A stretch of DNA of 41,419 nt from NCBI GenBank assembly GCA_002269645.1, contig NIVC01001400.1, positions 1-41,419 on the forward strand. Reading direction: 5' to 3'. The notes under the pieces were generated by a model. That model searched no databases and had not been told where the DNA came from. It saw only the letters and a program-made list of their open reading frames with translations. The DNA comes from Macrostomum lignano. Its lineage: Eukaryota. The translations under genes were made by a program, and so were the position numbers. Positions 3,064 through 40,944 of this stretch are shown one piece after another (within the stretch, counting starts at the first letter, position 1; each line of letters begins with the position of its first letter).

Positions 3064-4589
3064 TATGGCTAGATTGCTCTCGTTTGCCAATGAAAAAAGT
3101 ATATAGCAGGTGTTCAATTCCCGTATGCGTCTTCTGTTGCAACTCCGACTAGCTTACCGTTGAGTGTTTCGAAACTACCGATCTACCGGCATTATTTCAA
3201 ACGTGCTTATATAACGCTCCAATTTTTCTACCCTGACAACCAAGCAGTCCTTCGTCACAGCAAGAGCCTTCAGCCAATTGTAGGGCAGCGAGAGAATAAA
3301 AATTTCCTGAAATAAAACTCTGTTTAACTGCGGACCACCCGAGAGCTGGCCCACCTAAAAGTTCAGCTCAACTCACAATGGGGAAGGGATTTCAAAGAGT
3401 TTTTCTCTCTTTCAAAAGCAGAATAAAATGGCTGCTTTTGCTGGATGTACGCACGGGAACTAACCGTAACCCTTAGCAACTCAGCAGCTCACCTTCTCGT
3501 CCACATCCCCCAGTCCCACCGCCCATCCTGTCTGTGTAAACAACGTTTAGCACAGCAGCTCTGGGGGGGGGACGGAAGGCACGTCATCCCACGTCATATC
3601 AGTCCCCATGGCTCTCACCTGCAACAATAATAGGTAGTTTATTGTATCGAGACAGGCAGAGAAAGAGCCTGTGTGTTCTGCACTTGTGTGGGGGAGCGTG
3701 AATCAACAAACACAGCTGATGGACGTGACACGTGAATCATGGATATTTTGAAGGCCGTCTCTCGTAAACAAGAAGTCTATTTATGAAGCTGATGCCAGTC
3801 GGGATGCTGTCCTATTAGTAGTGCAATTAGAGGTTAACTGACAAGCTGATCTATAATTTGACCTTTTGCGAGTGTTCATCGCAAAATTATGTACCTATAA
3901 TAAAATGTTTGGAGTTATTAACAGACTTTCCGTAGTTTTCCATAGCTAAAATATGAAAGTGTGTAGTAAGCTGCTGCTTGGCCAGAGGTTTATGTGCAGC
4001 AAACGAATTTACCATATAAACAATCATGAGCAATCCATGCAGGGAGAGGTAACGAAAGCTAAGCAAAACAGCGCAACCATATTTGAGTAGGCAAAATCTC
4101 TTGGAAGCTAAAATAGACAGGCTCTGTCTACCTTGCAGTGTTGACTGAAGGCAAATACGGGCGGGACAGCACGGAATGCAGCAGCAAGCAGAGACTTCGG
4201 CTTGATCGTCAGGGACGAACAGGGACATCTGAGACCTGAACTGGACTGGAGGTACATGAGCATGGCATCACAGAACCACATAGTCTCATCGTTTTATGCC
4301 CTAATACATGCGATTATACTATAACTAACCTTATGTATACTTTGTTTTAATCCAGTAAAGTTTGTGAAAATTAACTTTTTTCCAAATTACCTGCGCAACT
4401 TTCTTTATTGTGGAGAAAAAATTGAAGGAAGGAATGATTATTATTTAGAATACTCTAGCAGTCTTTTAAATTAAAATAATTTTATATAAGTCTAAACTAT
4501 TGCTCCTTGATGTAAGCGTTGAAATTATTATATTATACGAGTATTTTAAAATAGAGATAAAGAGAAAGGAAAGAAAAAGGGTGGGAGAG

Positions 4590-6066
4590 CGGGATGTAGA
4601 AGAAATGAAGAAATGAAGAGGGAGAGGGAGAAGGAGACAGAGAGGGAAAGGGAGATAGAGAGAGAGACGAAGAGGAAGAGGGAGAGAGAGACGAAGAGGA
4701 AGAGGGAGAGGGAGAGGAAGAGGGAGAGGGAGATGGAGAGGGGGAGGGAGATGGAGAGGGAGATGGAGAGGGAGAGGGAGATGGAGAGGGAGAGGGAGAG
4801 GGAGAGGAAGAGGGAGAGGGAGAGGAAGAGGGAGAGGAAGATGGAGATGGAGAGGGAGAGGAAGAGGGAGAGGGAGAGGAAGAGGGAGAGGGAGAGGAAG
4901 AGGGAGAAGGAGATGAAGAGGGAGAGGGAGATGGAGAGGGAGAAGGAGACAGAGAGGGAAAGGGAGATAGAGAGAGAGACGAAGAGGAAGAGGGAGAGGG
5001 AGAGGAAGAGGGAGAGGGAGATGGAGAGGGAGATGGAGAGAGAGATGGAGAGGGAGAGGAAGAGGGAGATGGAGAGGGAGATGGAGAGAGAGACGAAGAG
5101 GAAGAGGGAGAGGGAGAGGAAGAGGAGAGGGAGATGGAGAGGGAGAGGAAGAGGGAGAGGGAGATGGAGAGGGAGATGGAGAGGGAGATGGAGAGGGAGA
5201 GGAAGAGGGAGAGGGAGATGGAGAGGGAGAGGGAGATGGAGAGAGAGACGAAGAGGGAGAGGGAGAGGGAGAGGAAGAGGGAGAGGGAGATGGAGAGGGA
5301 GATGGAGAGGGAGAGGAAGAGGGAGAGGGAGATGGAGAGGGAGAGGAAGAGGGAGAGGGAGATAGAGAGGGAAATGGAGAGGGAGATGGGGAGGGAGAGG
5401 AAGAGGGAGAGGGAGATGGAGAGGGAGATGGGGAGGGAGATGGGGAGGGAGAGGGAGATGGAGATGGAGAGGGAGATGGAGAGGGAGATGGAGAGGGAGA
5501 TGGAGAGGGAGATGGAGACAGAGCGGGAAAGGGAGATAGAGAGAGAGACGAAGAGGAAGAGGGAGAGGAGAGGAAGAGGGAGAGGGAGATGGAGAGGGAG
5601 ATGGAGAGGGAGAGGAAGAGGGAGAGGGAGATGGAGAGGGAGATGGAGATGGAGAGGGAGAGGGAGAGGAAGAGGGAGAGGGAGATGGAGATGGAGAGGG
5701 AGATGGAGAGGGAGATGGAGAGGGAGAGGAAGAGGGAGAGGGAGATGGAGAGGGAGAGGAAGAGGGAGAGGGAGATGGAGAGGGAGAGGGAGAGGGAGAG
5801 GGAGATGGAGAGGGAGATGGGGAGGGAGAGGAAGAGGGAGAGGGAGATGGAGAGGGAGATGGAGAGGGAGAGGAAGAGGGAGAGGGAGATGGAGATGGAG
5901 AGGGAGATGGAGAGAGAGATGGAGAGGGAGATGGAGAGGGAGATGGAGAGGGAGAGGAAGAGGGAGAGGGAGATGGAGAGGAAGAGGGAGAGGGAGATGA
6001 AGAGGGAGAGGGAGAGGGAGAGGGAGAGGGAGAGGAAGATGGAGAGGGAGATGGAGAGGTAGATAG
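4590..6066. repeat. Polypurine (GGGAGA/GAGATG/GAGGAA)n simple repeat
   Basis: About 1.5 kb of 6-nt purine units; source of the spurious ER/SP/LP ORFs. Confidence 0.95.
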
Positions 6067-7150: not shown

Positions 7151-7841
7151 GGAGGGATATCGACAAGGTGAGAGAGCATCGAATTGGGAAGAACACATGA
7201 GATGGAGACAGCTATAGAAGAAGGCGGAGAGGCACAGATGGTGAGTATAGCAAATCGCAGAATTTGATGAGGCCACGTGAGTAAAAAAAACACAGAGTGG
7301 ATGAAGGCTCTCCCTCAAAGTTGAATCCAAGGATTCTAAAAAAGTTGATCCCGGACAATGCAATCGCATACCTGAGGCTTAGGAAATGCATTAGCTAGGT
7401 GCAACCTGAGAAGAACCCCAATCCAAACCTTCATCATTGTGTCGCACTCCCAGCATCCACCCCATGCTTGAATGCAGAGCACGGCGCAGCCCACCACAAA
7501 CTTCCTTCAAAAGATTGTTCAGGAAGTTTGCCCCCCGGTTCTTCAGTTAAAACCTGCGCTATGCCGTGTGTCCCTGAGCAGCTGGGGCCAGATGAGAATT
7601 TGTGCTCAGAGCACTGAACTTCAAAGGGGAGCTCAGGCTGCTTTTACCCGGAAGAGAGCATTGCATTCATTTTTGCATTTGCGCGTACAGGACTTGTCAG
7701 TTGAAATTTTCCTATTTGATTCTGCACTACCAACAAGGAGAGAGGATACGTCGATAAGCTGATTTCAGCCATTATTAAGAATTCTAACTGAGCTGCGCTG
7801 GGTTAAATGCACTGTGGCGAAATAGTGGATAATGACTCACC

Positions 7842-8680
<839 letters not shown>

Positions 8681-9309: not shown

Positions 9310-10053
9310 TGCAGGGTGAGATGAGAGAAAGTAGATGTAAGAAGAGAAGAGATTTAGGACGAGAGGAGGTGTAGCGATAAAAATGTAGAGAGAGATGTAG
9401 GCATAAATGAGAGTAGGGAGAGGAGATGTAGGAATAGATGAGATTTAGAGAGAAGAGAGGTAAGGAGAAAGGAGATGTAGGCCTAGAGAAGATGTCAGGA
9501 GAGGTGATGTAGGGATAGGGAAAGAGGAAATGTAGGGAGAGAGAGTAAATGTAAGGGGAGAAATTTAGGAAGAGATGTAGAGAAAGTAGATCTAGGAAAA
9601 ATGATGAGGAGATGAGATGAAGGGAGAGAGGAGATGAAGGGAGAGAGGAGATGAAGGGAGAGAGGAGATGATGGGTGAAAGGAGATGTAGGGAGAGGAGA
9701 TGTAGGGAGAGGAGATGTAGGGAGAGGAGATGTAGGGATAGGAAAATAGGAGATATAATGATAGTGAAAGAGGAGATACAGGGATAGGAAAAGAGGAGAT
9801 GTAGGCATATTGAAAGAGGAGATATAGGGATAGGGAAAGAGGAGATGTAGGGATAGTGAAAGAGGAGATGTAGGGATAGGGAAAGAGGAGATGTAGGGAT
9901 AGGGAAGGGAGAGAGGAGAGGAGGGGAGAGAGGAGATGAAGGGAGAGAGGAGAGGAAGGGAGAGAGGAGATGAAGGGAGAGAGGAGAGGAAGGGAGAGAG
10001 GAGATGAAGGGAGAGAGGAGATGAAGGGAGAGAGGAGATGAAGGGAGAGGAGA
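9310..10053. repeat. GA-rich tandem simple repeats (AGAGGAGATGAAGGGAG-like) in FANK1 intron 1
   Basis: Roughly 17-23-nt purine units. Confidence 0.9.
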
Positions 10054-10480: not shown

Positions 10481-10514
10481 GTGAGTCAGGAGATTACCGA
10501 TTTTATTCTGTCAT

Positions 10515-13500
10515 CAGCTGACAGTTGATTCAGCATGACGTTCCCTGACAGTTGATTCAGCATGACGTTCTGTGACACTTGATTCAGCATGACGTTCTCT
10601 GACACTTGATTCAGCATGACGTTCTCTGACACTTGATTCAGCATGACGTTCTGTGACACTTGATTCAGCATGACGCTCTCTGACACTTGATTCAGCATGA
10701 CGCTCTCTGACACTTGATTCAGCATGACGTTCCCTGACACTTGATTCAGCATGACGCTCTCTGACACTTGATTCGGCATGACGTTCCCTGACACTTGATT
10801 CAGCATGACGCTCTCTGACACTTGATTCAGCATGACGCTCTCTGACACTTGATTCAGCATGACGCTCTCTGACACTTGATTCAGCATGACGCTCTCTGAC
10901 ACTTGATTCAGCATGACGCTCTCTGACACTTGATTCAGCATGACGCTCTCTGACACTTGATTCAGCATGACGCTCTCTGACACTTGATTCAGCATGACGT
11001 TCCCTGACAGTTGATTCAGCATGACGTTCCCTGACAGTTGATTCAGCATGACGCTCTCTGACAGTTGATTCAGCATGACGCTCTCTGACAGTTGATTCAG
11101 CATGACGTTCCCTGACACTTGATTCAGCATGACGTTCTGTGACACTTGATTCAGCATGACGCTCTCTGACACTTGATTCAGCATGACGCTCTCTGACACT
11201 TGATTCAGCATGACGTTCTGTGACAGTTGATTCAGCATGACGCTCTGTGACAGTTGATTCAGCATGACGCTCTCTGACACTTGATTCAGCATGACGTTCT
11301 CTGACACTTGATTCAGCATGACGTTCTGTGACACTTGATTCAGCATGACGCTCTCTGACACTTGATTCAGCATGACGTTCCCTGACAGTTGATTCAGCAT
11401 GACGTTCTGTGACACTTGATTCAGCATGACGTTCTCTGACAGTTGATTCAGCATGACGCTCTCTGACACTTGATTCAGCATGACGTTCCCTGACACTTGA
11501 TTCAGCATGACGTTCTCTGACAGTTGATTCAGCATGACGTTCTGTGACAGTTGATTCAGCATGACGTTCTGTGACAGTTGATTCAGCATGACGTTCTGTG
11601 ACACTTGATTCAGCATGACGTTCTCTGACACTTGATTCAGCATGACGTTCTGTGACAGTTGATTCAGCATGACGCTCTCTGACACTTGATTCAGCATGAC
11701 GCTCTCTGACACTTGATTCAGCATGACGCTCTCTGACAGTTGATTCAGCATGACGTTCTCTGACACTTGATTCAGCATGACGCTCCCTGACACTTGATTC
11801 AGCATGACGCTCTCTGACACTTGATTCAGCATGACGTTCTCTGACAGTTGATTCAGCATGACGCTCTCTGACACTTGATTCAGCATGACGTCTCTGACAG
11901 TTGATTCAGCATGACGTCTCTGACACTTGATTCAGCATGACGCTCTCTGACACTTGATTCAGCATGACGTTCTCTGACACTTGATTCAGCATGACGCTCT
12001 CTGACACTTGATTCAGCATGACGTTCTCTGACAGTTGATTCAGCATGACGTTCTGTGACACTTGATTCAGCATGACGTTCTCTGACACTTGATTCAGCAT
12101 GACGTTCCCTGACACTTGATTCAGCATGACGCTCTCTGACACTTGATTCAGCATGACGCTCTCTGACACTTGATTCAGCATGACGCTCTCTGACAGTTGA
12201 TTCAGCATGACGTTCTCTGACACTTGATTCAGCATGACGCTCCCTGACACTTGATTCAGCATGACGCTCTCTGACACTTGATTCAGCATGACGTTCTGTG
12301 ACAGTTGATTCAGCATGACGCTCTCTGACACTTGATTCAGCATGACGCTCCCTGACACTTGATTCAGCATGACGTTCTGTGACAGTTGATTCAGCATGAC
12401 GTTCTCTGACACTTGATTCAGCATGACGCTCCCTGACACTTGATTCAGCATGACGTTCTGTGACACTTGATTCAGCATGACGTTCTCTGACACTTGATTC
12501 AGCATGACGCTCTCTGACACTTGATTCAGCATGACGCTCTCTGACACTTGATTCAGCATGACGCTCTCTGACACTTGATTCAGCATGACGTTCTCTGACA
12601 GTTGATTCAGCATGACGTTCTGTGACAGTTGATTCAGCATGACGCTCTCTGACAGTTGATTCAGCATGACGTTCTCTGACAGTTGATTCAGCATGACGCT
12701 CTCTGACAGTTGATTCAGCATGACGTTCTCTGACAGTTGATTCAGCATGACGCTCTCTGACAGTTGATTCAGCATGACGTTCCCTGACAGTTGATTCAGC
12801 ATGACGTTCTGTGACAGTTGATTCAGCATGACGTTCTCTGACACTTGATTCAGCATGACGTTCCCTGACAGTTGATTCAGCATGACGTTCTCTGACACTT
12901 GATTCAGCATGACGTTCTCTGACAGTTGATTCAGCATGACGTTCTGTGACAGTTGATTCAGCATGACGTTCCCTGACAGTTGATTCAGCATGACGCTCTC
13001 TGACACTTGATTCAGCATGACGCTCTCTGACAGTTGATTCAGCATGACGTTCTGTGACAGTTGATTCAGCATGACGTTCTGTGACACTTGATTCAGCATG
13101 ACGTTCTCTGACACTTGATTCAGCATGACGTTCCCTGACAGTTGATTCAGCATGACGTTCTCTGACACTTGATTCAGCATGACGTTCTCTGACAGTTGAT
13201 TCAGCATGACGTTCTGTGACAGTTGATTCAGCATGACGTTCTCTGACACTTGATTCAGCATGACGTTCTCTGACACTTGATTCAGCATGACGTTCCCTGA
13301 CAGTTGATTCAGCATGACGTTCTCTGACACTTGATTCAGCATGACGTTCTGTGACAGTTGATTCAGCATGACGCTCTCTGACACTTGATTCAGCATGACG
13401 CTCCCTGACACTTGATTCAGCATGACGTTCTGTGACAGTTGATTCAGCATGACGTTCTCTGACACTTGATTCAGCATGACGCTCCTGACACTTGATTCAG

Positions 13501-16500
13501 CATGACGTTCTGTGACAGTTGATTCAGCATGACGTTCTCTGACACTTGATTCAGCATGACGCTCTCTGACACTTGATTCAGCATGACGCTCTCTGACACT
13601 TGATTCAGCATGACGCTCTCTGACACTTGATTCAGCATGACGTTCTCTGACAGTTGATTCAGCATGACGTTCTGTGACAGTTGATTCAGCATGACGCTCT
13701 CTGACACTTGATTCAGCATGACGTTCTCTGACAGTTGATTCAGCATGACGCTCTCTGACAGTTGATTCAGCATGACGTTCTCTGACAGTTGATTCAGCAT
13801 GACGCTCTCTGACAGTTGATTCAGCATGACGTTCCCTGACAGTTGATTCAGCATGACGTTCTGTGACACTTGATTCAGCATGACGTTCTCTGACACTTGA
13901 TTCAGCATGACGTTCCCTGACAGTTGATTCAGCATGACGTTCTGTGACACTTGATTCAGCATGACGTTCTCTGACACTTGATTCAGCATGACGTTCTGTG
14001 ACAGTTGATTCAGCATGACGTTCCCTGACAGTTGATTCAGCATGACGCTCTCTGACACTTGATTCAGCATGACGCTCTCTGACAGTTGATTCAGCATGAC
14101 GTTCTGTGACAGTTGATTCAGCATGACGTTCTGTGACACTTGATTCAGCATGACGTTCTCTGACACTTGATTCAGCATGACGTTCCCTGACAGTTGATTC
14201 AGCATGACGTTCTCTGACACTTAATTCAGCATGACGTTCTCTGACAGTTGATTCAGCATGACGTTCTGTGACAGTTGATTCAGCATGACGTTCTCTGACA
14301 CTTGATTCAGCATGACGTTCTCTGACACTTGATTCAGCATGACGTTCCCTGACAGTTGATTCAGCATGACGTTCTCTGACACTTGATTCAGCATGACGTT
14401 CTGTGACAGTTGATTCAGCATGACGTTCTCTGACAGTTGATTCAGCATGACGCTCTCTGACACTTGATTCAGCATGACGTTCCCTGACACTTGATTCAGC
14501 ATGACGCTCTCTGACACTTGATTCAGCATGACGTTCCCTGACACTTGATTCAGCATGACGTTCTGTGACACTTGATTCAGCATGACGCTCTCTGACACTT
14601 GATTCAGCATGACGCTCTCTGACACTTGATTCAGCATGACGTTCCCTGACACTTGATTCAGCATGACGCTCTCTGACACTTGATTCAGCATGACGTTCCC
14701 TGACACTTGATTCAGCATGACGTTCTGTGACACTTGATTCAGCATGACGCTCTCTGACACTTGATTCAGCATGACGCTCTCTGACACTTGATTCAGCATG
14801 ACGCTCTCTGACACTTGATTCAGCATGACGCTCTCTGACACTTGATTCAGCATGACGCTCTCTGACACTTGATTCAGCATGACGCTCTCTGACACTTGAT
14901 TCAGCATGACGTTCCCTGACAGTTGATTCAGCATGACGTTCCCTGACAGTTGATTCAGCATGACGCTCTCTGACAGTTGATTCAGCATGACGCTCTCTGA
15001 CAGTTGATTCAGCATGACGTTCCCTGACACTTGATTCAGCATGACGTTCTGTGACACTTGATTCAGCATGACGCTCTCTGACACTTGATTCAGCATGACG
15101 CTCTCTGACAGTTGATTCAGCATGACGTTCTGTGACAGTTGATTCAGCATGACGCTCTGTGACAGTTGATTCAGCATGACGCTCTCTGACACTTGATTCA
15201 GCATGAAGTTCTCTGACACTTGATTCAGCATGACGTTCTGTGACACTTGATTCAGCATGACGTTCTCTGACACTTGATTCAGCATGACGTTCCCTGACAG
15301 TTGATTCAGCATGACGCTCTCTGACAGTTGATTCAGCATGACGTTCTCTGACAGTTGATTCAGCATGACGCTCTCTGACACTTGATTCAGCATGACGTTC
15401 CCTGACACTTGATTCAGCATGACGTTCTCTGACAGTTGATTCAGCATGACGTTCTGTGACAGTTGATTCAGCATGACGTTCTGTGACAGTTGATTCAGCA
15501 TGACGTTCTCTGACACTTGATTCAGCATGACGCTCTCTGACACTTGATTCAGCATGACGTTCTGTGACAGTTGATTCAGCATGACGTTCTGTGACAGTTG
15601 ATTCAGCATGACGTTCTCTGACACTTGATTCAGCATGACGTTCTCTGACACTTGATTCAGCATGACGTTCTGTGACACTTGATTCAGCATGACGCTCTCT
15701 GACACTTGATTCAGCATGACGTTCCCTGACACTTGATTCAGCATGACGCTCTCTGACACTTGATTCAGCATGACGCTCTCTGACACTTGATTCAGCATGA
15801 CGCTCTCTGACAGTTGATTCAGCATGACGCTCTCTGACACTTGATTCAGCATGACGCTCCCTGACACTTGATTCAGCATGACGCTCTCTGACACTTGATT
15901 CAGCATGACGTTCTGTGACAGTTGATTCAGCATGACGTTCTGTGACACTTGATTCAGCATGACGCTCCCTGACACTTGATTCAGCATGACGTTCTGTGAC
16001 AGTTGATTCAGCATGACGTTCTCTGACACTTGATTCAGCATGACGCTCTCTTACACTTGATTCAGCATGACGCTCTCTGACACTTGATTCAGCATGACGC
16101 TCTCTGACACTTGATTCAGCATGACGTTCTCTGACACTTGATTCAGCATGACGTTCTCTGACAGTTGATTCAGCATGACGTTCCCTGACACTTGATTCAG
16201 CATGACGTTCTCTGACAGTTGATTCAGCATGACGTTCTGTGACACTTGATTCAGCATGACGTTCTGTGACACTTGATTCAGCATGACGCTCTCTGACAGT
16301 TGATTCAGCATGACGCTCTCTGACAGTTGATTCAGCATGACGCTCTCTGACACTTGATTCAGCATGACGTTCTGTGACACTTGATTCAGCATGACGCTCT
16401 CTGACACTTGATTCAGCATGACGTTCTCTGACACTTGATTCAGCATGACGTTCTCTGACAGTTGATTCAGCATGACGTTCTGTGACACTTGATTCAGCAT

Positions 16501-18816
16501 GACGCTCTCTGACACTTGATTCAGCATGACGTTCCCTGACACTTGATTCAGCATGACGTTCTCTGACACTTGATTCAGCATGACGTTCCCTGACAGTTGA
16601 TTCAGCATGACGTTCTCTGACACTTGATTCAGCATGACGTTCTCTGACAGTTGATTCAGCATGACGCTCTCTGACACTTGATTCAGCATGACGTTCTCTG
16701 ACACTTGATTCAGCATGACGTTCTCTGACAGTTGATTCAGCATGACGTTCTCTGACAGTTGATTCAGCATGACGTTCTGTGACAGTTGATTCAGCATGAC
16801 GTTCTCTGACACTTGATTCAGCATGACGCTCTCTGACACTTGATTCAGCATGACGTTCTGTGACAGTTGATTCAGCATGACGTTCTGTGACAGTTGATTC
16901 AGCATGACGTTCTCTGACACTTGATTCAGCATGACGCTCCCTGACACTTGATTCAGCATGACGTTCTGTGACAGTTGATTCAGCATGACGTTCTCTGACA
17001 CTTGATTCAGCATGACGCTCTCTGACACTTGATTCAGCATGACGCTCTCTGACACTTGATTCAGCATGACGCTCTCTGACACTTGATTCAGCATGACGTT
17101 CTCTGACAGTTGATTCAGCATGACGTTCTGTGACAGTTGATTCAGCATGACGCTCTCTGACACTTGATTCAGCATGACGTTCTCTGACAGTTGATTCAGC
17201 ATGACGCTCTCTGACAGTTGATTCAGCATGACGTTCTCTGACAGTTGATTCAGCATGACGCTCTCTGACAGTTGATTCAGCATGACGTTCCCTGACAGTT
17301 GATTCAGCATGACGTTCTGTGACACTTGATTCAGCATGACGTTCTCTGACACTTGATTCAGCATGACGTTCCCTGACAGTTGATTCAGCATGACGTTCTC
17401 TGACACTTGATTCAGCATGACGTTCTCTGACAGTTGATTCAGCATGACGTTCTGTGACAGTTGATTCAGCATGACGTTCCCTGACAGTTGATTCAGCATG
17501 ACGCTCTCTGACACTTGATTCAGCATGACGCTCTCTGACAGTTGATTCAGCATGACGTTCTGTGACAGTTGATTCAGCATGACGTTCTGTGACACTTGAT
17601 TCAGCATGACGTTCTCTGACACTTGATTCAGCATGACGTTCCCTGACAGTTGATTCAGCATGACGTTCTCTGACACTTAATTCAGCATGACGTTCTCTGA
17701 CAGTTGATTCAGCATGACGTTCTGTGACAGTTGATTCAGCATGACGTTCTCTGACACTTGATTCAGCATGACGTTCTCTGACACTTGATTCAGCATGACG
17801 TTCCCTGACAGTTGATTCAGCATGACGTTCTCTGACACTTGATTCAGCATGACGTTCTGTGACAGTTGATTCAGCATGACGTTCTCTGACAGTTGATTCA
17901 GCATGACGCTCTCTGACACTTGATTCAGCATGACGTTCCCTGACACTTGATTCAGCATGACGCTCTCTGACACTTGATTCAGCATGACGTTCCCTGACAC
18001 TTGATTCAGCATGACGTTCTGTGACACTTGATTCAGCATGACGCTCTCTGACACTTGATTCAGCATGACGCTCTCTGACACTTGATTCAGCATGACGTTC
18101 CCTGACACTTGATTCAGCATGACGCTCTCTGACACTTGATTCAGCATGACGTTCCCTGACACTTGATTCAGCATGACGTTCTGTGACACTTGATTCAGCA
18201 TGACGCTCTCTGACACTTGATTCAGCATGACGCTCTCTGACACTTGATTCAGCATGACGCTCTCTGACACTTGATTCAGCATGACGCTCTCTGACACTTG
18301 ATTCAGCATGACGCTCTCTGACACTTGATTCAGCATGACGCTCTCTGACTCTTGATTCAGCATGACGTTCCCTGACAGTTGATTCAGCATGACGTTCCCT
18401 GACAGTTGATTCAGCATGACGCTCTCTGACAGTTGATTCAGCATGACGCTCTCTGACAGTTGATTCAGCATGACGTTCCCTGACACTTGATTCAGCATGA
18501 CGTTCTGTGACAGTTGATTCAGCATGACGCTCTGTGACAGTTGATTCAGCATGACGCTCTCTGACACTTGATTCAGCATGACGTTCTCTGACACTTGATT
18601 CAGCATGACGTTCTGTGACACTTGATTCAGCATGACGTTCTCTGACACTTGATTCAGCATGACGTTCCCTGACAGTTGATTCAGCATGACGCTCTCTGAC
18701 AGTTGATTCAGCATGACGTTCTCTGACAGTTGATTCAGCATGACGCTCTCTGACACTTGATTCAGCATGACGTTCTCTGACACTTGATTCAGCATGACGT
18801 TCTCTGACAGTTGATT
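10515..18816. repeat. 27-bp minisatellite array, left arm (about 307 units; CTGACA[C/G]TTGATTCAGCATGACG[C/T]TC[T/C][C/G/T])
   Basis: Continuous tandem units; the minus strand reads as a 9-aa repeat MLNQ(V/L)S(E/Q/G)(N/S)V. Confidence 0.98.
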
Positions 18817-19045
18817 ACGTCAGTTTGAGGCAGGTATCTGACTCTAACTGGTTTTAAACCCCCCCCCGCGCCGGCCCGGCCTCGCTTTGGTGGGTTGGTG
18901 GGGTGCTGGTGCTCTGCGTGCGTGCAGGGCTTAGGGCAGCCTCCCCCCGCTCTGTGTTATTTAGTCACGCGTCGCGGCCGCTGAGTCGGCGTAATTTTGG
19001 CAAAATATTTTTAGCCTGCCTGATTTGCCAAGCACTGCACTCACA

Positions 19046-20071
19046 ATGGACTCTACGTTGGGCAGCATGACCGTGCAGGCCCTCAAAGATGTCTTACGCG
19101 AGAAGGCCTTACCTACAAGTGGCAATAAAGAAGAGCTGATAGGCCGCCTGCTCGCTGCAAGCCAGGCCGAACGAGCTCCCAGCGATGACGACGGTGACGA
19201 CGACCAGGACGAGGATGACGTGCGCCGGGCTGCGCCAGCGGAGGAGGCCACAGAAGCGCAGATTCGGCAGACTCAGAAGAGGATCGAGCTGCTTAAACTG
19301 CAGAAGGCTGAGGCCCAGTTGCGGGATGAAGTGCAGTCGATCCGCAGTGGCGCCGCATCGCCCCCGCTGGCCAGAGGAGGGCCGGACATCTACGCCAGCC
19401 TGTTCGGGGACCAGAGCCGACAACCGAGGTTTGATTCGGCCGGAGCCCAGCGGCCCCCATCAGCGCTGCTCATCCCGGAATTTCTGGACGAGAGGCAGCA
19501 GTCGGGAGGATGGCTGACACAGGAACGTGGTCGCCTGACTCTGAAAGGCGCAACGCCGAGCCTGTCCGGAGTCAACTTCGGCCAGTGGGTGGCTGCCAAC
19601 GCGCGGATCATGCAGCGACTGCTGGAGACCGGCCAGCTGGTGGCGCCCGGTACGGATGGACAGCCCGACTGCAAGAGTCTGAACGCCTACCTCAACTTTA
19701 ACATCCACATCGGCGAGCTGCTCGACGCTGGCTACGACTGGAAGGTGGTGCTCCAGTACGACCAGGACATGAGGCTGCAGCAGCACTCGCGACAGCGCGA
19801 CTGGGACAGCCCCGATCTGAACCTCATCATCAAGCATATGACGGCGCCCAAAAACCTGCGAGCTGCTGGCCCAGTCGCGGTCGGTCAAGGAGTCCAGGGT
19901 CACCGTAGCAGGGGCCAGCTGTCATCCGCTGGACAGGTCATCTGCGGCTTGTTCAATAGCAACAAAGGCTGTCACAGACACACCTGCAATTTCGCCCACA
20001 TCTGCCGCATCTGCGAAGGGAGCCACTCAAAGCTGCAACACAGCTCGGTGGCTGCCGAATCAAAAAACTGA
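19046..20071 (+). CDS. Gag-like ORF1 (341 aa): N-terminal SAP domain, C-terminal CCCH/CCHH zinc fingers
   Basis: SMTVQALKDVLREKALPTSGNKEELIGRLL fits the SAP consensus. W..YDQDMR...W motif. C-x8-C-x4-C-x3-H-x-C-x2-C-x3-H-x4-H, similar to Ngaro ORF1 fingers. Confidence 0.85.
   Translation: MDSTLGSMTVQALKDVLREKALPTSGNKEELIGRLLAASQAERAPSDDDGDDDQDEDDVRRAAPAEEATEAQIRQTQKRIELLKLQKAEAQLRDEVQSIRSGAASPPLARGGPDIYASLFGDQSRQPRFDSAGAQRPPSALLIPEFLDERQQSGGWLTQERGRLTLKGATPSLSGVNFGQWVAANARIMQRLLETGQLVAPGTDGQPDCKSLNAYLNFNIHIGELLDAGYDWKVVLQYDQDMRLQQHSRQRDWDSPDLNLIIKHMTAPKNLRAAGPVAVGQGVQGHRSRGQLSSAGQVICGLFNSNKGCHRHTCNFAHICRICEGSHSKLQHSSVAAESKN
20062..20068 (+). promoter_or_regulatory. Candidate -1 programmed ribosomal frameshift heptamer A_AAA_AAC
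   Basis: Gag ends TCA AAA AAC TGA. The heptamer is correctly phased (X XXY YYZ), lies immediately before the stop, and leads into the open pol frame. Confidence 0.75.
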
Positions 20072-22587
20072 GCAAAGAGGCGGGTCGCGGCGGCACCAGT
20101 TTTAGCCCTAAGCGGACGGCGTCTGATAGACAGTCCAAAATTTTAATTCCATGCGAGACAGCTGCTCGCACTGCCACTGGCCCTGCCGCTCGCCCTGCCA
20201 CTCGCCTTGCCGCTCGACCTGCCACTCGCCCTGCCGCTCGCCCTGCCGCTCGCCCTGCCGCTCGCCATGCCACTCGCCCTGCCACTCGCCCTGCCGCCGG
20301 CCCTGCCGCCGGCCCTGCTGCCGGCCCTACTGCCGGCCCTGCTGCCGTTCCTGCTGCCGGCCCTGCTGCCGGCCCTGCTGCCGTTCCTGCTGCCGGTCCT
20401 GCTGCCGGCCCTGCTGCCGGCCCTGCCGCCGGTCCTGCTGCCGGCCCTGCTGCCGGTCCTGCTGCCGGCCCTGCCGCCTGTCCTGCTGCCGTTCCTGCTG
20501 CCGGTCCTGCTGCCGGCCCTGCTGCCGGCCCTGCCGCCGGTCCTGCTGCCGGCCCTGCTGCCGGTCCTGCTGCCGGCCCTGCTGCCGGCCCTGCTGCCGG
20601 CCCTGCTGCCGGCCCTGCTGCCGGTCCTGCTGCCGGCCCTGCTGCCGGTCCTGCTGCCGGCCCTGCTGCCGGCCCAGCCGCCGGCCCTGCCGCCGGTCCT
20701 GCTGCCGGCCCAGCCGCCGGCCCTGCCGCCGGTCCTGCTGCCGGCCCAGCCGCTGGCCCTGCCGCCGGCCCTGCCGCCGGCCCCGCTGCCGGCCCTGCTG
20801 CCGGTCCTGCTGCCGGCGCTGCTGCCGGCCCTGTTGCCGGCCCGGTGGCTGCACTCCGAAAACGTTGGCCGCTGTTAACTGCTGCTTGGACACCAGTCCT
20901 GCTCGGAGACTCGGACGCGGAGTTTCTGATCGCGGGAATTCGCGATGGCTTTCGCATCACCGACGCGGCTCCGACCAGCGAATCCCAGCTCGAAAATCAT
21001 GCATCCGCCCGCTGCGAGGCAAATCGGAATGCCGTTGAGCTGCAGATCAGAGAGGAGGTCGTGGCTGGCCGGTACATCAGCGCAACTGACTTGGGCATCG
21101 CCAGGCCGACCATCATCAGCCCACTGGGCGCCGTCCCGAAGGCAGACGGCGCCATCCGCCTGATTCACGACGCGTCCGCGCCACAGGGCAACAGCCTCAA
21201 CGATCTGTACAAGCCCCGCCAGAAGATGAAGTTTGCCAATGTCGAGGATCTCACCAGGCAGCTGGCACCAAGCTGGTTCATCAGCAAGGTCGACCTACGC
21301 CACGCCTACCGAAGTGTTCAGGTGCACCCAGACTGCTATAAGGCGACGGGGCTCCGGTGGACGTTCGAGCTGGACGGTCAGCCCACTTATCTGGTTGACA
21401 CGCGACTCCCATTCGGTGCGGCGGCATCAGTCAACATTTTCCACCGCCTAACGCAAGCTGTCAAGCGCTTTATGTACAGGCAATTCTCGCATCTGTCCAA
21501 ATTCGTCGTCATCGCATACCTCGACGATTTCTGCATAGCTGCCCGGGACTACGAGGTCTGCCTGCAGCTGCACAATTTTCTGCTGGTCACCCTGCAGCGC
21601 CTCGGCTTTGAGATCAACTGGGCCAAGACGCAGAGCCCAGCCACTTCGGTCACTTTCCTGGGTGTGCAGATCGACACATTGACTGGCCTGCTGTCACTGC
21701 CCGCCAAGAAGATGGACGGCCTTCGAGAACTTCTCCAGGACTGCGCCAACTCGAAGAGCCTGCAAAAACGTCGCCTTCAGCACCTAGTCGGCAAACTGAA
21801 CTGGTTCTGCAAAGTGGCCAAACCTGCAAAGGCCCTGCTTCGCGCGCTCCTGGAGATAACCATCGCTATTCCTGAGCAGCATCATCGAGTACCGGTGCGC
21901 GGCGAGCTACTGGCCCAGTTGCAGTTCTGGCAGCATGCAATCCCAGTGTTCCCGACCGACAAGCTGTGGCGGCGTGCACGAGTGCTGGCAGCGGTCGAGA
22001 CGGACGCCTGCGTCAGTGCCGGTGGCATGATCCTGAGCACCTCTGATGGCCAGCGCGAGTTCCGCCTCGTCGACTTCTGCAGTGACGCCGGTGGCATCTT
22101 CCTGAGCGAGCACATCAACGCCAAGGAGACGGTACTGCCGCTGCTCGCCATCATTCTGTTCCAGGAGCAGCTGGCCGGCGGCAAGGTGGCCTGCTACGTC
22201 GACAGCAGCGCGGCGGTCGGCACCATCAACCGCGGTGCCTCCAGCAACCCGATCGTCATGACCCTGCTCAAAACGGCCACTCTGGCAGCGCTGAGGCACG
22301 ACTTTCAGTTTCGAGCTCACCATATGCCGGGGTCCTGGCAGCTGCTGAGCGACCCGCTGTCGCGCTGCCTGACGCATCCCCGCCACATGCTGCTGTTTCT
22401 GCTGCGCTACTTCGGCCGGGCCAAGGCGCAGCCGGAAGATCTGCGCAGGGCCTGCCTCAATGAGTCAACGGCGGCCCGGTTGCTTGAGCAGGCGTCGCTC
22501 GCGCTGAGCCCCGGTCTCTGGCGCAGTTCTCGAGCGGAGCGAGTTGCGACGGCTGAAGCAGATCCCGAGCTCAGGTACGAGTCTTAG
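20068..22587 (+). CDS. Pol (reverse transcriptase + RNase H) in the -1 frame relative to gag, including a PAAG-repeat linker
   Basis: Frame is open from 19960 to TAG at 22585-22587. RT motifs: [58 protein letters not shown]. RNase H motifs: TDAC, HINAKE, YVDS, SDPLSR. The RT domain begins at about 20900. Confidence 0.9.
20165..20845 (+). repeat. GC-rich 12-bp minisatellite (CCTGCTGCCGGC)n inside the element, encoding (PAAG)n in the pol frame
   Basis: Tandem 12-nt units with no stop codon in the pol frame. Confidence 0.93.
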
Positions 22588-22776
22588 AGCTATTGCTTGG
22601 ACCTGGCTTTTTTGGCTTGGTTTAATTTTTTCTGCGGCTCGTTGATTTGATTTTACACGCTTGTCTCCTTCTCCCTCTTTCTGTTGGTGTTCGGGTTCGT
22701 TTTCCCTTTCTGGGCCGCGTCTGCCGGTCTTTTGTGCCACTTGCTTTTACTCTGCGTTAGTCTTTTGGGGTTTAAT

Positions 22777-25700
22777 CAGCATGACGTTCTCTGACACTTG
22801 ATTCAGCATGACGTTCCCTGACAGTTGATTCAGCATGACGTTCTCTGACACTTGATTCAGCATGACGCTCTCTGACACTTGATTCAGCATGACGCTCTCT
22901 GACACTTGATTCAGCATGACGTTCTCTGACACTTGATTCAGCATGACGTTCCCTGACAGTTGATTCAGCATGACGTTCTCTGACACTTGATTCAGCATGA
23001 CGTTCTCTGACACTTGATTCAGCATGACGCTCTCTGACACTTGATTCAGCATGACGTTCTCTGACAGTTGATTCAGCATGACGTTCTCTGACAGTTGATT
23101 CAGCATGACGTTCTCTGACAGTTGATTCAGCATGACGCTCTCTGACAGTTGATTCAGCATGACGTTCTGTGACAGTTGATTCAGCATGACGTTCTCTGAC
23201 AGTTGATTCAGCATGACGTTCTCTGACACTTGATTCAGCATGACGTTCTCTGACACTTGATTCAGCATGACGTTCTGTGACAGTTGATTCAGCATGACGT
23301 TCTCTGACACTTGATTCAGCATGACGTTCTCTGACACTTGATTCAGCATGACGCTCTCTGACACTTGATTCAGCATGACGTTCTCTGACACTTGATTCAG
23401 CATGACGTTCTCTGACACTTGATTCAGCATGACGTTCTCTGACACTTGATTCAGCATGACGTTCTGTGACACTTGATTCAGCATGACGTTCTGTGACACT
23501 TGATTCAGCATGACGTTCTGTGACAGTTGATTCAGCATGACGTTCTGTGACACTTGATTCAGCATGACGCTCTCTGACACTTGATTCAGCATGACGTTCT
23601 CTGACACTTGATTCAGCATGACGTTCTGACACTTGATTCAGCATGACGCTCTCTGACACTTGATTCAGCATGACGCTCTCTGACACTTGATTCAGCATGA
23701 CGCTCTCTGACACTTGATTCAGCATGACGCTCTCTGACACTTGATTCAGCATGACGCTCTCTGACACTTGATTCAGCATGACGTTCTCTGACACTTGATT
23801 CAGCATGACGTTCTCTGACACTTGATTCAGCATGACGTTCTCTGACACTTGATTCAGCATGACGTTCTGACACTTGATTCAGCATGACGCTCTCTGACAC
23901 TTGATTCAGCATGACGTTCTCTGACACTTGATTCAGCATGACGCTCTCTGACACTTGATTCAGCATGACGCTCTCTGACACTTGATTCAGCATGACGCTC
24001 TCTGACACTTGATTCAGCATGACGTTCTCTGACACTTGATTCAGCATGACGCTCTCTGACACTTGATTCAGCATGACGCTCTCTGACACTTGATTCAGCA
24101 TGACGTTCTCTGACACTTGATTCAGCATGACGTTCTCTGACACTTGATTCAGCATGACGCTCTCTGACACTTGATTCAGCATGACGTTCTCTGACACTTG
24201 ATTCAGCATGACGTTCTCTGACACTTGATTCAGCATGACGTTCTCTGACACTTGATTCAGCATGACGTTCTGTGACACTTGATTCAGCATGACGCTCTCT
24301 GACACTTGATTCAGCATGACGCTCTCTGACACTTGATTCAGCATGACGCTCTCTGACACTTGATTCAGCATGACGCTCTCTGACACTTGATTCAGCATGA
24401 CGCTCTCTGACACTTGATTCAGCATGACGCTCTCTGACACTTGATTCAGCATGACGCTCTCTGACACTTGATTCAGCATGACGTTCCCTGACAGTTGATT
24501 CAGCATGACGTTCCCTGACAGTTGATTCAGCATGACGCTCTCTGACAGTTGATTCAGCATGACGCTCTCTGACACTTGATTCAGCATGACGTTCCCTGAC
24601 ACTTGATTCAGCATGACGTTCTGTGACACTTGATTCAGCATGACGCTCTCTGACACTTGATTCAGCATGACGCTCTCTGACAGTTGATTCAGCATGACGT
24701 TCTGTGACAGTTGATTCAGCATGACGCTCTGTGACACTTGATTCAGCATGACGCTCTCTGACACTTGATTCAGCATGACGTTCTCTGACACTTGATTCAG
24801 CATGACGTTCTCTGACACTTGATTCAGCATGACGCTCTCTGACACTTGATTCAGCATGACGTTCCCTGACAGTTGATTCAGCATGACGTTCCCTGACAGT
24901 TGATTCAGCATGACGTTCTCTGACAGTTGATTCAGCATGACGCTCTCTGACACTTGATTCAGCATGACGTTCCCTGACACTTGATTCAGCATGACGTTCT
25001 GACACTTGATTCAGCATGACGTTCTGTGACAGTTGATTCAGCATGACGTTCTCTGACACTTGATTCAGCATGACGTTCTCTGACACTTGATTCAGCATGA
25101 CGTTCTCTGACACTTGATTCAGCATGACGTTCTCTGACACTTGATTCAGCATGACGCTCTCTGACACTTGATTCAGCATGACGCTCTCTGACACTTGATT
25201 CAGCATGACGCTCTCTGACACTTGATTCAGCATGACGCTCTCTGACACTTGATTCAGCATGACGCTCTCTGACAGTTGATTCAGCATGACGTTCTGACAG
25301 TTGATTCAGCATGACGTTCTCTGACAGTTGATTCAGCATGACGCTCTCTGACACTTGATTCAGCATGACGCTCTCTGACAGTTGATTCAGCATGACGTTC
25401 TGTGACAGTTGATTCAGCATGACGTTCTGTGACAGTTGATTCAGCATGACGCTCTCTGACACTTGATTCAGCATGACGTTCTCTGACACTTGATTCAGCA
25501 TGACGTTCCCTGACAGTTGATTCAGCATGACGTTCTCTGACACTTGATTCAGCATGACGCTCTCTGACACTTGATTCAGCATGACGCTCTCTGACACTTG
25601 ATTCAGCATGACGCTCTCTGACACTTGATTCAGCATGACGTTCTCTGACAGTTGATTCAGCATGACGTTCTCTGACACTTGATTCAGCATGACGCTCTCT

Positions 25701-27217
25701 GACACTTGATTCAGCATGACGTTCTCTGACAGTTGATTCAGCATGACGCTCTCTGACAGTTGATTCAGCATGACGCTCTCTGACAGTTGATTCAGCATGA
25801 CGTTCTCTGACAGTTGATTCAGCATGACGTTCTCTGACAGTTGATTCAGCATGACGTTCTCTGACACTTGATTCAGCATGACGTTCTCTGACACTTGATT
25901 CAGCATGACGTTCCTGACAGTTGATTCAGCATGACGTTCTCTGACACTTGATTCAGCATGACGTTCTCTGACAGTTGATTCAGCATGACGTTCTGTGACA
26001 GTTGATTCAGCATGACGTTCTCTGACAGTTGATTCAGCATGACGCTCTCTGACACTTGATTCAGCATGACGTTCTCTGACAGTTGATTCAGCATGACGTT
26101 CTCTGACACTTGATTCAGCATGACGTTCTCTGACACTTGATTCAGCATGACGTTCTCTGACACTTGATTCAGCATGACGTTCCCTGACAGTTGATTCAGC
26201 ATGACGTTCTCTGACACTTGATTCAGCATGACGTTCTCTGACAGTTGATTCAGCATGACGTTCTCTGACAGTTGATTCAGCATGACGTTCCCTGACACTT
26301 GATTCAGCATGACGTTCTCTGACAGTTGATTCAGCATGACGTTCTGTGACACTTGATTCAGCATGACGTTCTGTGACACTTGATTCAGCATGACGCTCTC
26401 TGACACTTGATTCAGCATGACGCTCTCTGACAGTTGATTCAGCATGACGCTCTCTGACACTTGATTCAGCATGACGTTCTGTGACACTTGATTCAGCATG
26501 ACGCTCTCTGACACTTGATTCAGCATGACGTTCTCTGACACTTGATTCAGCATGACGTTCTCTGACAGTTGATTCAGCATGACGTTCTGTGACACTTGAT
26601 TCAGCATGACGCTCTCTGACACTTGATTCAGCATGACGCTCTCTGACAGTTGATTCAGCATGACGTTCCCTGACAGTTGATTCAGCATGACGTTCTGTGA
26701 CACTTGATTCAGCATGACGTTCTCTGACACTTGATTCAGCATGACGTTCCCTGACAGTTGATTCAGCATGACGTTCTCTGACAGTTGATTCAGCATGACG
26801 TTCTGTGACACTTGATTCAGCATGACGCTCTCTGACACTTGATTCAGCATGACGTTCTCTGACACTTGATTCAGCATGACGTTCTCTGACACTTGATTCA
26901 GCATGACGTTCTCTGACAGTTGATTCAGCATGACGTTCTCTGACAGTTGATTCAGCATGACGCTCTCTGACAGTTGATTCAGCATGACGTTCCCTGACAC
27001 TTGATTCAGCATGACGTTCTGTGACAGTTGATTCTGCATGACGTTCTGTGACAGTTGATTCAGCATGACGTTCTGTGACACTTGATTCAGCATGACGTTC
27101 TCTGACACTTGATTCAGCATGACGTTCTCTGACACTTGATTCAGCATGACGTTCTCTGACACTTGATTCAGCATGACGTTCTGTGACACTTGATTCAGCA
27201 TGACGTTCTCTGACCCT
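22777..27217. repeat. 27-bp minisatellite array, right arm (about 164 units)
   Basis: Same unit as the left arm; resumes mid-unit directly after the element; occasional 25-bp deletion units. Confidence 0.98.
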
Positions 27218-27307
27218 TGATCGTAATTACCGCTGAGCTGCTCTGAGCTCCTTTAACTGACCTTGGTTAGCAGTCCTTGGATCCTAAAATTTCGCAACCC
27301 CCCGCAG

Positions 27308-27899: not shown

Positions 27900-28083
27900 C
27901 CTATCTCTTGGTGGACCCTTAATTCTGTCTCTTGGTGGGCGCTCCTGTCTCTTGGTGGGCGCTCCTGTCTCTTGGTGGGCGCTCCTGTCTTTTGGTGGGA
28001 GCCCTGTCTCTTGGTGGGCGCTCCTGTCTTTTGGTGGGCGCTCCTGTCTTTTGGTGGGAGCCCTGTCTCTTGGTGGGAGCCCC
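27900..28083. repeat. 20-bp minisatellite (CTCCTGTCTCTTGGTGGGCG)n in FANK1 intron 3
   Basis: About 9 tandem units. Confidence 0.92.
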
Positions 28084-28305
28084 TAGCTGTCTCATACCTA
28101 TGCAATACCTGCCAAAGAGGTGCCAAAAGTATACAGTTCCTCTTATTCGTCGAGCCTCGATGGTTACCTCTTTCATTTACTTACTGGGAGAGTGCAATTT
28201 TTCTGGGGCCATTGTGCGGTTGTCGGATACGGCCCCTTTCATGGCTCCCCTTTGTGCATACATATGTCACTAGACCCAAACCTTTGCACACGCAAACACC
28301 CGCAG

Positions 28306-28500
28306 GGCCAGACGGCACTGTTCTATTGCGCAATGCACCGCCACTTGCGCATGGCGGAGCTGCTTCTCAGCGCCGGTGCCGACCCGACGAGGCCCAACAT
28401 CAAAGGCGTCACGCCGACGGCCGTGGCCGACGCGCAGGAGAGCGCCGCGATGCGATCTCTGCTGGCAAAAACGGCCGCTGCTGCCGCTGCTTCCAGCTGA
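28306..28500 (+). CDS. FANK1: FANK1 exon 4 (terminal ankyrin repeats)
   Basis: CCGCAG acceptor. GQTALFYCAMHRHLRMAELLLSAGADP...KTAAAAAASS*. Spliced CDS is 135+394+386+195 = 1110 nt = 369 aa, with FN3-then-ankyrin architecture. Confidence 0.92.
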   Translation, partial: GQTALFYCAMHRHLRMAELLLSAGADPTRPNIKGVTPTAVADAQESAAMRSLLAKTAAAAAASS

Positions 28501-28576
28501 TGTCAAGCACTTCTGACGGTGAGATGTTTTTGTACTCATCTATACGTATCACTGCGTGCACATGTACGTGTACTGA

Positions 28577-28905
28577 GATTCCCTGTTAGAGGAGATTCCT
28601 GTTAGATATGAGATTCCCCTGTGAGAAGAATCCTGTTAGATATGAGATTCCTCTGTTAGAGGAGATCCCTGTTAGATATGATATTCCCCTGTGAGAAGAA
28701 TCCTGTTAGATATGAGATTCCTCTGTTAGAGGAGATTCCTGTTAGATATTAGATTCCCCTGTTAGATGAGATCCCTGTTAGATATGAGATTCCTGTTGGA
28801 TATGAGTTTCCCCTGTTAGATGAGGTCTCTGTTAGAGATGAGATTCACCTGCTAGATGAGATACCCCTGTTAGATATGAGACTCCTGTAAGGCATGAGAT
28901 TCCCT
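28577..28905. repeat. About 18-20-bp minisatellite (GAGATTCCTGTTAGATAT-like)
   Basis: Degenerate tandem units. Confidence 0.85.
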
Positions 28906-29162
28906 TACTGGACATGCACTATATCATGTTATTCAATATCAACCACTTTCTACATCTAACAACATTCTTCTAAATTTCAGAATTCGAAAAAGTTTAAAAC
29001 CGTTGGAATAAACAAAAGCTGATCTTGTCGGAACCATCAAAATGCAATGCACTGCGACTAAGTCTAGCAAATGTACACGCATAACTTATGAAGACAGACC
29101 TCAGAAAACTTTTCCAATCCCATAATAACATAAAATTTTTATAACAAAGCCAAGGAAATATA

Positions 29163-29470
29163 ACTGTTGCTAGGGAAGCCAGAACGGGACAGATATCTGT
29201 TGCTAGGGAAGCTAAAAGGGGACAGATATTTGTTGCTAGGGAAGCCAGAAGGACACAGATATCTGTTGCTAGGGAAGCCAGAAGTGGACAGATATCTGTT
29301 GCTAGGGAAGCCAGAAGGACACAGATATCTGTTGCTAGGGAAGCCAGAAGGACACAGATATCTGTTGCTAGGGAAGCCAGAAGGACACAGATATCTGTTT
29401 CTAGGGAAGCCAGAAGGACACAGATATCTGTTGCTAGGGAAGCCAGAAAAGGACATATCTGTTGCTAGGA
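29163..29470. repeat. 33-bp minisatellite (CTGTTGCTAGGGAAGCCAGAAGGACACAGATAT)n
   Basis: About 9 units. Confidence 0.93.
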
Positions 29471-38278: not shown

Positions 38279-38552
38279 TGATACCATCAAAGGCCATGAT
38301 ACCATCGTTTAATGTAGCTCTCTGACATACCATCGAAGGCCATGATACCATCGTTTATGTAGCTCTCTGCCATACCATCGAAGGCAATGACACCATAGTT
38401 TAATGTAGCTCTCTGCCATACCATCGAAGGCAATGACACCATAGTTTAATGTAGCTCTCTGCCAACCATCGAAGGCAATGACACCATAGTTTAATGTAGC
38501 TCTCTGCCATACCATCGAAGGCAATGACACCATAGTTTAATGTAGCTCTCTG
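38279..38552. repeat. 46-bp minisatellite (ATACCATCGAAGGCAATGACACCATAGTTTAATGTAGCTCTCTGCC)n
   Basis: About 6 units. Confidence 0.9.
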
Positions 38553-40390: not shown

Positions 40391-40579
40391 CTGTAAGGTT
40401 GGGGGGAGGGGAATTATAGATGATCAGTAGAGATTTTGCTGTATTACGCAGTACATGTGTGAAGTTGTTACGCAGCGATGTAAATGTACATCTACCTACC
40501 GACAGACCACTTTTAGTATATGGAAACTTTGAATAAACTACATGTACATGTAGCTTCTGACCTCTCATACTTGATATAT

Positions 40580-40822
40580 CTGAGCAATTCCCCCAGTAAC
40601 CCTCGACATCGCAGCAATTCCGCCCGTAAGCCATGACATCTCAGCAATTCCCCCAGTAACCCTTGGCATCTCAGCAATTCCCCCACTAACCCTTGGCATC
40701 TCAGCAATTCCCCCAGTAACCCTTGGCATCTCAGCAATTCCCCAGTAACCCTTGGCATCTCAGCAATTCCCCAGTAACCCTTGACATCTCAGCAATTCCC
40801 CAGTAACCCTTGACATCACAGC
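40580..40822. repeat. 30-bp minisatellite (CAGCAATTCCCCCAGTAACCCTTGGCATCT)n in the paralog 2 intron
   Basis: About 8 units. Confidence 0.92.
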
Positions 40823-40944
40823 ACCTCGTGTTAGTAGTCAATGTCGCAATCAAATTTACTGTCTAAAAAAGACAATCTATATACATGTACGTATACTGAG
40901 ATAAATGAAACTCTCTAAAAATAAAACATAGGCTGATGACTTAC

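Follow-up and report, generated by a model that had tools for sequence, protein, structure and literature searches.

How does a retroelement make its polymerase when the pol gene lies out of frame with gag and has no start codon ahead of its conserved domains? The question is raised by an Ngaro-type retroelement copy in the flatworm Macrostomum lignano, which we analyzed within a 41,419-nucleotide stretch of DNA, hereafter the window (contig NIVC01001400.1, assembly GCA_002269645.1, positions 1 to 41,419 of the forward strand). The copy is 3.96 kb long (18817..22775, + strand) and carries gag together with a pol gene for reverse transcriptase (RT) and RNase H; its type is taken from its relatives. 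We consider it very probable that Gag is fused to Pol by programmed -1 ribosomal frameshifting at the slippery heptamer A_AAA_AAC at 20062-20068, as an earlier sequence-only reading of the locus had proposed.

The gag open reading frame (ORF) is unbroken over 341 aa from ATG 19046 (19046..20071, + strand) and ends in TCA AAA AAC TGA. The heptamer (20062..20068, + strand) is therein placed in the X_XXY_YYZ phase of gag, and the stop codon TGA (20069..20071, + strand) lies directly 3' of it. Gag has no other phased XXXYYYZ heptamer, and AAAAAAC occurs nowhere else in the element, 17% of which is A. Gag overlaps the already open -1 frame by 36 codons (19960..20068, + strand), and from the base composition of the element only ~3e-4 phased AAAAAAC would be expected in this overlap. 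With mammalian ribosomes, A_AAA_AAC is listed among the shiftiest heptamers in a 2016 review of recoding (PMC5009743).

The frame relations around the site are equally clear-cut. No stop interrupts the -1 frame between 19960 and 22587, and this frame contains the conserved pol ORF of 580 aa (20845..22587, + strand), in which Pfam and 88 homologues define an RT followed by an RNase H. The RT corresponds to Pfam RVT_1 (~21238-21672, E 8.6e-18) and is the only pol domain that Pfam matched in the window, while RNase H was placed by a profile of 14 family members that aligns over both the RT and the RNase H of Ty3 (4ol8, 7q5b). Pfam found neither a protease, a DDE integrase nor a methyltransferase in the element. 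The first ATG, GTG or TTG of the pol frame is the GTG at 20845, and the first ATG (21226) is inside the RT; it is residue 128 of the 580-aa ORF, downstream of residues that are invariant across the 14 family members. The 0 frame stops at 20069, the +1 frame stops at TAG 20103, and the only additional ORF crossing this stretch (ATG 20151-21038) terminates ahead of the RT, so that the end of gag is connected to the RT by the -1 frame alone. Both genes are free of stops and frameshifts, over 341 codons in gag and more than 580 in pol. The sequence-only reading had given the same gag end, open frame, first possible start and flanking stops, all of which we could read directly, and its arithmetic for the fusion protein is also correct.

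We suggest the following route to the polymerase. Most ribosomes on gag would end at TGA 20069 and yield Gag. A minority would slip back one nucleotide on A_AAA_AAC, a site that allows the tRNAs for Lys and Asn to pair again in the -1 frame. These ribosomes would then read ~100 nt of unique sequence and a linker encoded by a 673-nt tandem array before reaching the RT and RNase H. The product would be a Gag-linker-RT/RNase H fusion of roughly 1180 aa (341 + ~839). Elements with a tyrosine recombinase (YR) encode neither a protease nor a DDE integrase (PMC3783388), and since a protease is lacking, the fusion presumably stays uncleaved. Through it, assemblies of Gag would receive RT in a ratio that is low and fixed, and a flexible linker between the uncleaved Gag and the RT is plausible. 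The slippage itself, its efficiency and its stimulator are what we infer here from the sequence.

Heptamer conservation among relatives was a check named beforehand in the sequence-only reading. A single gag homologue, P0089 (39% identity over 95% of its length), is detectable among 5.8 billion proteins; an exact look-up of the window gag returned nothing, and scans with the gag alignment, of viral contigs and of contigs from metagenomes, were also empty. Because there is only this one gag homologue, the heptamer can be checked in one close lineage, and the other comparison is with relatives at 30-47% pol identity. The close lineage offers the clearest test. The gag of L004, the locus of P0089, ends in GCA AAA AAC TGA, with heptamer, phase and adjacent stop as in the window. 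The heptamer is kept there though the eight or nine residues ahead of it cannot be aligned with the window gag. The -1 frame of L004 is open into a 21-nt tandem array (~1250-1323) that runs to the end of the contig. L003, a locus from the same sample whose pol is 54% identical to that of the window, starts in a related 21-nt array (1-~90) that is in frame with pol; this pol is broken by one frameshift. L003 and L004 probably represent the two halves of a single element whose assembly was broken inside the array. As read from these contigs, the order of gag, heptamer and stop, in-frame tandem array and RT is common to both members of the lineage. The repeat units of the window (period 12) and of L003/L004 (period 21) are unrelated.

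For the wider comparison, a search with the pol protein gave 88 homologues. Apart from P0001 and P0002 (54% identity), these are 30-38% identical to the window pol and come from metagenomes and cnidarian genomes. A metagenome scan with the pol alignment added 80 further loci at 30-47% identity, and the same scan of viral contigs gave nothing. In each locus we located the match to the N-terminus of pol, determined how far upstream its frame stays open and looked for an upstream ORF of at least 190 codons. Together with the loci already retrieved, this gave 56 informative loci, i.e., 55 relatives and the window, in a census that was automated, with one N-terminal match per locus and without manual curation. 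Pol overlaps gag in the -1 frame in 20 relatives and the window; gag and pol share one frame with a single stop between them in 22 relatives; pol overlaps gag in the +1 frame in six; and the other seven have gaps or several stops.

Among the 20 relatives with a -1 overlap, 15 have A_AAA_AAC inside the overlap, and in 15 of 15 it stands in the X_XXY_YYZ phase. The background is low: AAAAAAC occurs 51 times in the 304 kb of sense strand of the 80 loci (0.17 per kb). In the 1.82 kb of overlaps, ~0.3 occurrences would be expected in any phase and ~0.1 in phase, compared with 15 observed, every one of them in phase. The heptamer in the overlap is the only AAAAAAC present in most carrier loci. It lies 0-36 nt ahead of the gag stop in the relatives. 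Three further relatives have another phased heptamer in the overlap, one each with G_GGA_AAC, G_GGA_AAA and A_AAA_AAG. The carriers form 14 clusters at 60% pol identity that are scattered over the pol tree, a simple neighbour-joining distance tree; thus, they are not one recent lineage counted repeatedly. Together with L004, these relatives strongly support the proposed Gag-Pol frameshift.

The census also points to two other ways of recoding at this junction. The stops in the 22 single-stop loci (e.g., L001, L008, L023, L025, L034 and L066) are TGA in 13, TAG in nine and TAA in none, with C following 11 of the 13 TGA codons and G following seven of the nine TAG codons. This layout suggests leaky-stop readthrough in those 22 loci. 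It resembles readthrough of the gammaretrovirus type in that gag and pol share one frame with a single stop, but the window does not use readthrough, its pol being in the -1 frame. The six relatives with a +1 overlap (L005, L007, L009, L011, L033 and L039) form one clade, in all six members of which CC[ACT] CGT TTT CGT is conserved within the overlap, read in gag's frame. The 2016 review describes a minimal +1 cassette, that of influenza A virus PA-X (PMC5009743). A Phe codon followed by CGT is the core that the six relatives have in common with that cassette, whereas the codon 5' of the Phe codon is unlike the one in the review's cassette; the motif is found in sister lineages and not in the window. 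We regard TTT_CGT as a candidate +1 frameshift site in retroelements.

Of 50 gag C-termini in the family, 49 have a CCCH zinc finger a short way upstream of the recoding site. Since the junction follows this finger in 49 of 50 loci, we take the junctions to be homologous. We therefore offer a broader proposal, tentatively and with a little less than even confidence: Ngaro-type elements as a group may depend on recoding for an uncleavable Gag-RT fusion, with repeated switching among -1 A_AAA_AAC, leaky TGA or TAG and +1 TTT_CGT at one homologous junction after the CCCH finger, to which the flatworm lineage would add a fast-evolving Gag-RT spacer encoded by tandem repeats.

Several observations weigh against frameshifting as the explanation for the window. 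The first concerns a stimulatory structure. The sequence-only reading had proposed a GC-rich stem downstream of the heptamer, in the unique stretch of the -1 frame past the shift site (20072..20170, + strand). Complementary GC-rich segments are present there and are paired in the minimum-energy fold, but the proposal is not supported. Downstream folds of 72 and 99 nt have z scores of +0.58 and +0.82 against dinucleotide shuffles, i.e., they are slightly less stable. In a crude scan for hairpins and H-type pseudoknots starting 3-10 nt past the site, 57% and 54% of 200 shuffles, respectively, did as well as the window. With the folds and this crude scan both at shuffle level, a stimulatory structure is unsupported in the window and we do not count the stem as evidence, though a non-nested structure may exist. 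Nor is there a conserved nested structure across the family (mean z -0.22 over 17 sites). A hairpin lies near the site in a few loci (L004, L017, L031, L050 and L014), and nominally unusual hairpins occur in L004 and L006 only. The stop directly follows the heptamer in five of the 17 sites, and it does so in L004, L014, L031 and L038 as in the window; this adjacent 0-frame stop may contribute to shifting.

The second concerns the open frame itself. The 12-nt tandem array found by Tandem Repeats Finder (TRF) at 20171..20843 (+ strand; ~56 copies, 73% GC, 0% indels) separates the shift site from the RT and, in the -1 frame, encodes a repetitive linker of ~224 aa that is rich in Ala, Gly and Pro. 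None of the three forward frames is closed in the array, and it is open on the opposite strand as well. Since it is a GC-rich repeat with a period that is a multiple of three, its openness is trivial, and the array makes up three quarters of the start-less open frame. Its openness is thus weak evidence for selection or for a real frame. Of the argument from the open -1 frame, what stands is that only this frame links the end of gag to the RT; the 673 nt of array add little to it. The remaining points concern the copy and its relatives. No tyrosine recombinase was matched anywhere in the window (tblastn with three family YRs as queries, best E 0.12), and there are no direct repeats of at least 20 nt between the ends of the insert, so that terminal or split repeats are absent from this copy. 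It may be non-autonomous or decayed, in which case its expression is perhaps irrelevant. Two relatives with a -1 overlap, L065 and L067, have no phased heptamer, and the relatives are mostly metagenome contigs.

Some of these points would also be expected if the copy were a dead fragment, in which the frame offset, the array and the heptamer have no function and the 12-nt array is a microsatellite that expanded after insertion and kept the frame by chance. The missing recombinase and terminal repeats, the location within a satellite and the array that is open in every forward frame all fit such a history. The spacer is also unusual: the distance from the heptamer to the conserved N-terminal motif of pol is 848 nt in the window versus 44-113 nt in other relatives, none of which has so long a spacer. 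We nevertheless think this history very unlikely as an account of the junction. Gag and pol are intact, and a second copy in the species differs by one residue in 590. At the corresponding place in the nearest relative there is an independent array, of period 21 and again in frame with pol. A dead copy is possible for the window insert as such, and the heptamer would still be a conserved feature of the family.

It could also be that pol is made separately, by internal or non-AUG initiation, by reinitiation, or by trans- or cis-splicing, and that the heptamer is incidental. In many relatives an ATG is present close to where the conserved part of pol begins, and pol is annotated by gene callers as a protein of its own; the P0001 model, for instance, starts pol inside the repeat. 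A few loci have no gag/pol overlap, such as L002 with its gap of 100 nt. In the window, however, the pol frame has no ATG until past the invariant RT-proximal motifs. Separate expression would leave the phase-locked conservation of the heptamer unexplained, and likewise the single stop in a leaky context or the TTT_CGT that sister clades have at the same junction. The phased heptamer, the recoding junctions of the sister clades and the missing ATG together argue for translational coupling of pol to gag, and we give separate expression little credence.

Six A residues are short for efficient transcriptional slippage. Although the site does have a run of six A, in which one added nucleotide would give the same frame change, and RT slippage at a retroviral shift motif in vitro is described in one report (PMC5737442), it is most improbable that RNA polymerase II or the element's RT makes the fusion by adding an A, since polymerase slippage is blind to phase and to the following base, whereas 15 of 15 relatives are in phase with C after the run (chance ~7e-8 for one phase), and the G_GGA_AAC and G_GGA_AAA members have no A6 run at all.

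We now turn to the class of element in which -1 frameshifting would operate. In the sequence contexts of three relatives (L001, L002 and L003) we found gag, pol and a third ORF directly after pol. These third ORFs share homology with one another (E ~1e-25) and have weak matches to the Phage_integrase model, and that of L003 has a recombinase-like C-terminal motif. They are predicted to be tyrosine recombinases. L001 further has two pairs of repeats (A1 406-692, B1 4554-4692, A2 4687-4971, B2 5068-5206) in the order A1, gag-pol-YR, B1, A2, B2. Split direct repeats with the order A-ORFs-B-A-B are the Ngaro arrangement (PMC3783388). Among the 14 family members, RT_RNaseH is matched in eight and Dam (methyltransferase) in none. 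Because the relatives show the A-gag-pol-YR-B-A-B layout and no methyltransferase, we assign the family to the Ngaro type within the DIRS order on sequence grounds. Directly upstream of gag, L002 has ORFs with a NADAR and a GDSL-lipase domain (1374-2390). The GDSL-lipase ORF presumably corresponds to the extra hydrolase ORF of some Ngaro elements.

The window copy resembles Ngaro elements in that its pol consists of RT and RNase H without a methyltransferase and in its insertion without target duplication, and it differs from them in having neither the YR nor the split repeats that its relatives have. A gag/pol overlap is present in 26 of the 55 informative relatives. With DIRS1-like elements the window copy shares the order and an RT/RNase H related to Ty3/Gypsy (PMC3266345), but it has no methyltransferase, no inverted terminal repeats, no internal complementary region and no long pol/YR overlap. 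We rejected a DIRS1-type assignment, as there is no methyltransferase match and there are no inverted terminal repeats. The label of DIRS-type given in the sequence-only reading is thus right at the level of the order; the element is not of the DIRS1 type, its relatives are of the Ngaro type, and the window copy itself has no recombinase.

Gag-pol -1 frameshifting at such heptamers is textbook knowledge for retroviruses and for retrotransposons with long terminal repeats (LTRs). The likeness of the window to these systems is close: a heptamer of the shiftiest class is at the end of gag in the 0-frame phase, pol is in the -1 frame, overlapping and start-less, and the site is conserved. There are also differences. 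The Ngaro-type element has no protease or DDE integrase, so the fusion would not be self-processed; a downstream hairpin or pseudoknot is unsupported here; and a tandem-repeat linker of ~224 aa follows the site. For the DIRS order we found no description of -1 gag-pol frameshifting in the literature searched, though primary descriptions of Ngaro elements may mention recoding. In three overviews that treat DIRS, Ngaro and VIPER elements, all that is said on this point is that ORFs may overlap or be in different frames (PMC3783388, PMC3266345, PMC6681497), and the available part of the 2016 recoding review has no mention of DIRS or tyrosine-recombinase elements (PMC5009743). A full-text search for Ngaro or tyrosine recombinase together with slippage or readthrough returned nothing relevant. 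The mechanism would thus be one already known, in a class of host element that appears new or poorly documented for it.

What these results mean depends on the scale. Taken by itself, the window gives a modest result, since the mechanism is a textbook one and the copy is partial; the census with its three modes is a by-product of greater interest. The literature searched says very little on polymerase expression in the DIRS order, and the phase-locked heptamer provides a model of expression in which the ratio of Gag to Gag-RT would be fixed without a protease. It also provides an annotation rule: pol should be joined to gag at the heptamer rather than called as a truncated ORF. One junction with -1 shifting, readthrough or +1 shifting would be a natural comparative series for the evolution of recoding signals. 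If true, the +1 shift at TTT_CGT would be a use by retroelements of the type of shift site known from influenza A PA-X.

Gag has a SAP domain, which is of a DNA-binding type, at its N-terminus (~19058-19153, Pfam, E 3.5e-9) and, at its C-terminus, the CCCH zinc finger followed by a C-x2-C-x4-H-x4-H motif (~19943-20041). The SAP domain was seen in the window gag and P0089 only. Ngaro ORF1 has been proposed to influence the choice of integration site (PMC8547959).

The element, with a GC content of ~60-73%, splits a 16.7-kb array of a 27-bp satellite (10518-27221). TRF gives the left part as 10518..18816 and the right part as 22776..27221, neither with a strand. The satellite unit is broken off after ...GTTGATT at 18816 and picks up with CAGCATG... 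at 22777, with an ambiguity of 1 nt. Since the unit continues exactly across the insert, the insertion was precise, with neither target duplication nor loss, and target duplications are absent in YR elements (PMC3266345). No terminal inverted repeats of the window copy were found, and blastn and tblastn found no second copy of the element inside the window. The copy, which has gag and pol only, is either a deletion derivative or a non-autonomous form, and the exact ends of the insert argue against random loss at one end. A prokaryotic reading of the ORF list was rejected. The long minus-strand 'ORFs' that flank the element (10486-18795 and 22747-27201) are the 27-bp satellite, and they are artefacts, because 27 is a multiple of 3.

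The second copy in the species is known from P0001, a UniRef entry from Macrostomum lignano with one residue different from the window pol in 590. No part of the window encodes the tail of P0001; thus, Macrostomum lignano has at least one further near-identical copy. The P0001 gene model begins inside the tandem array, exits the element at a GT that closely precedes the stop of pol (window 22570-22587) and runs into unrelated sequence. It is probably an annotation artefact, in which a retroelement was called as a host gene.

The remaining window is rich in other tandem repeats (4617-6063, 7841-8678, 9609-10049, 27925-29469, 38281-38552 and 40578-40823). They include 1.4 kb of (AGAGGG)n, in which the purine skew is extreme, 0.8 kb of (CTAT)n and several minisatellites of 17-46 nt. 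The region is thus rich in satellites and is probably heterochromatic.

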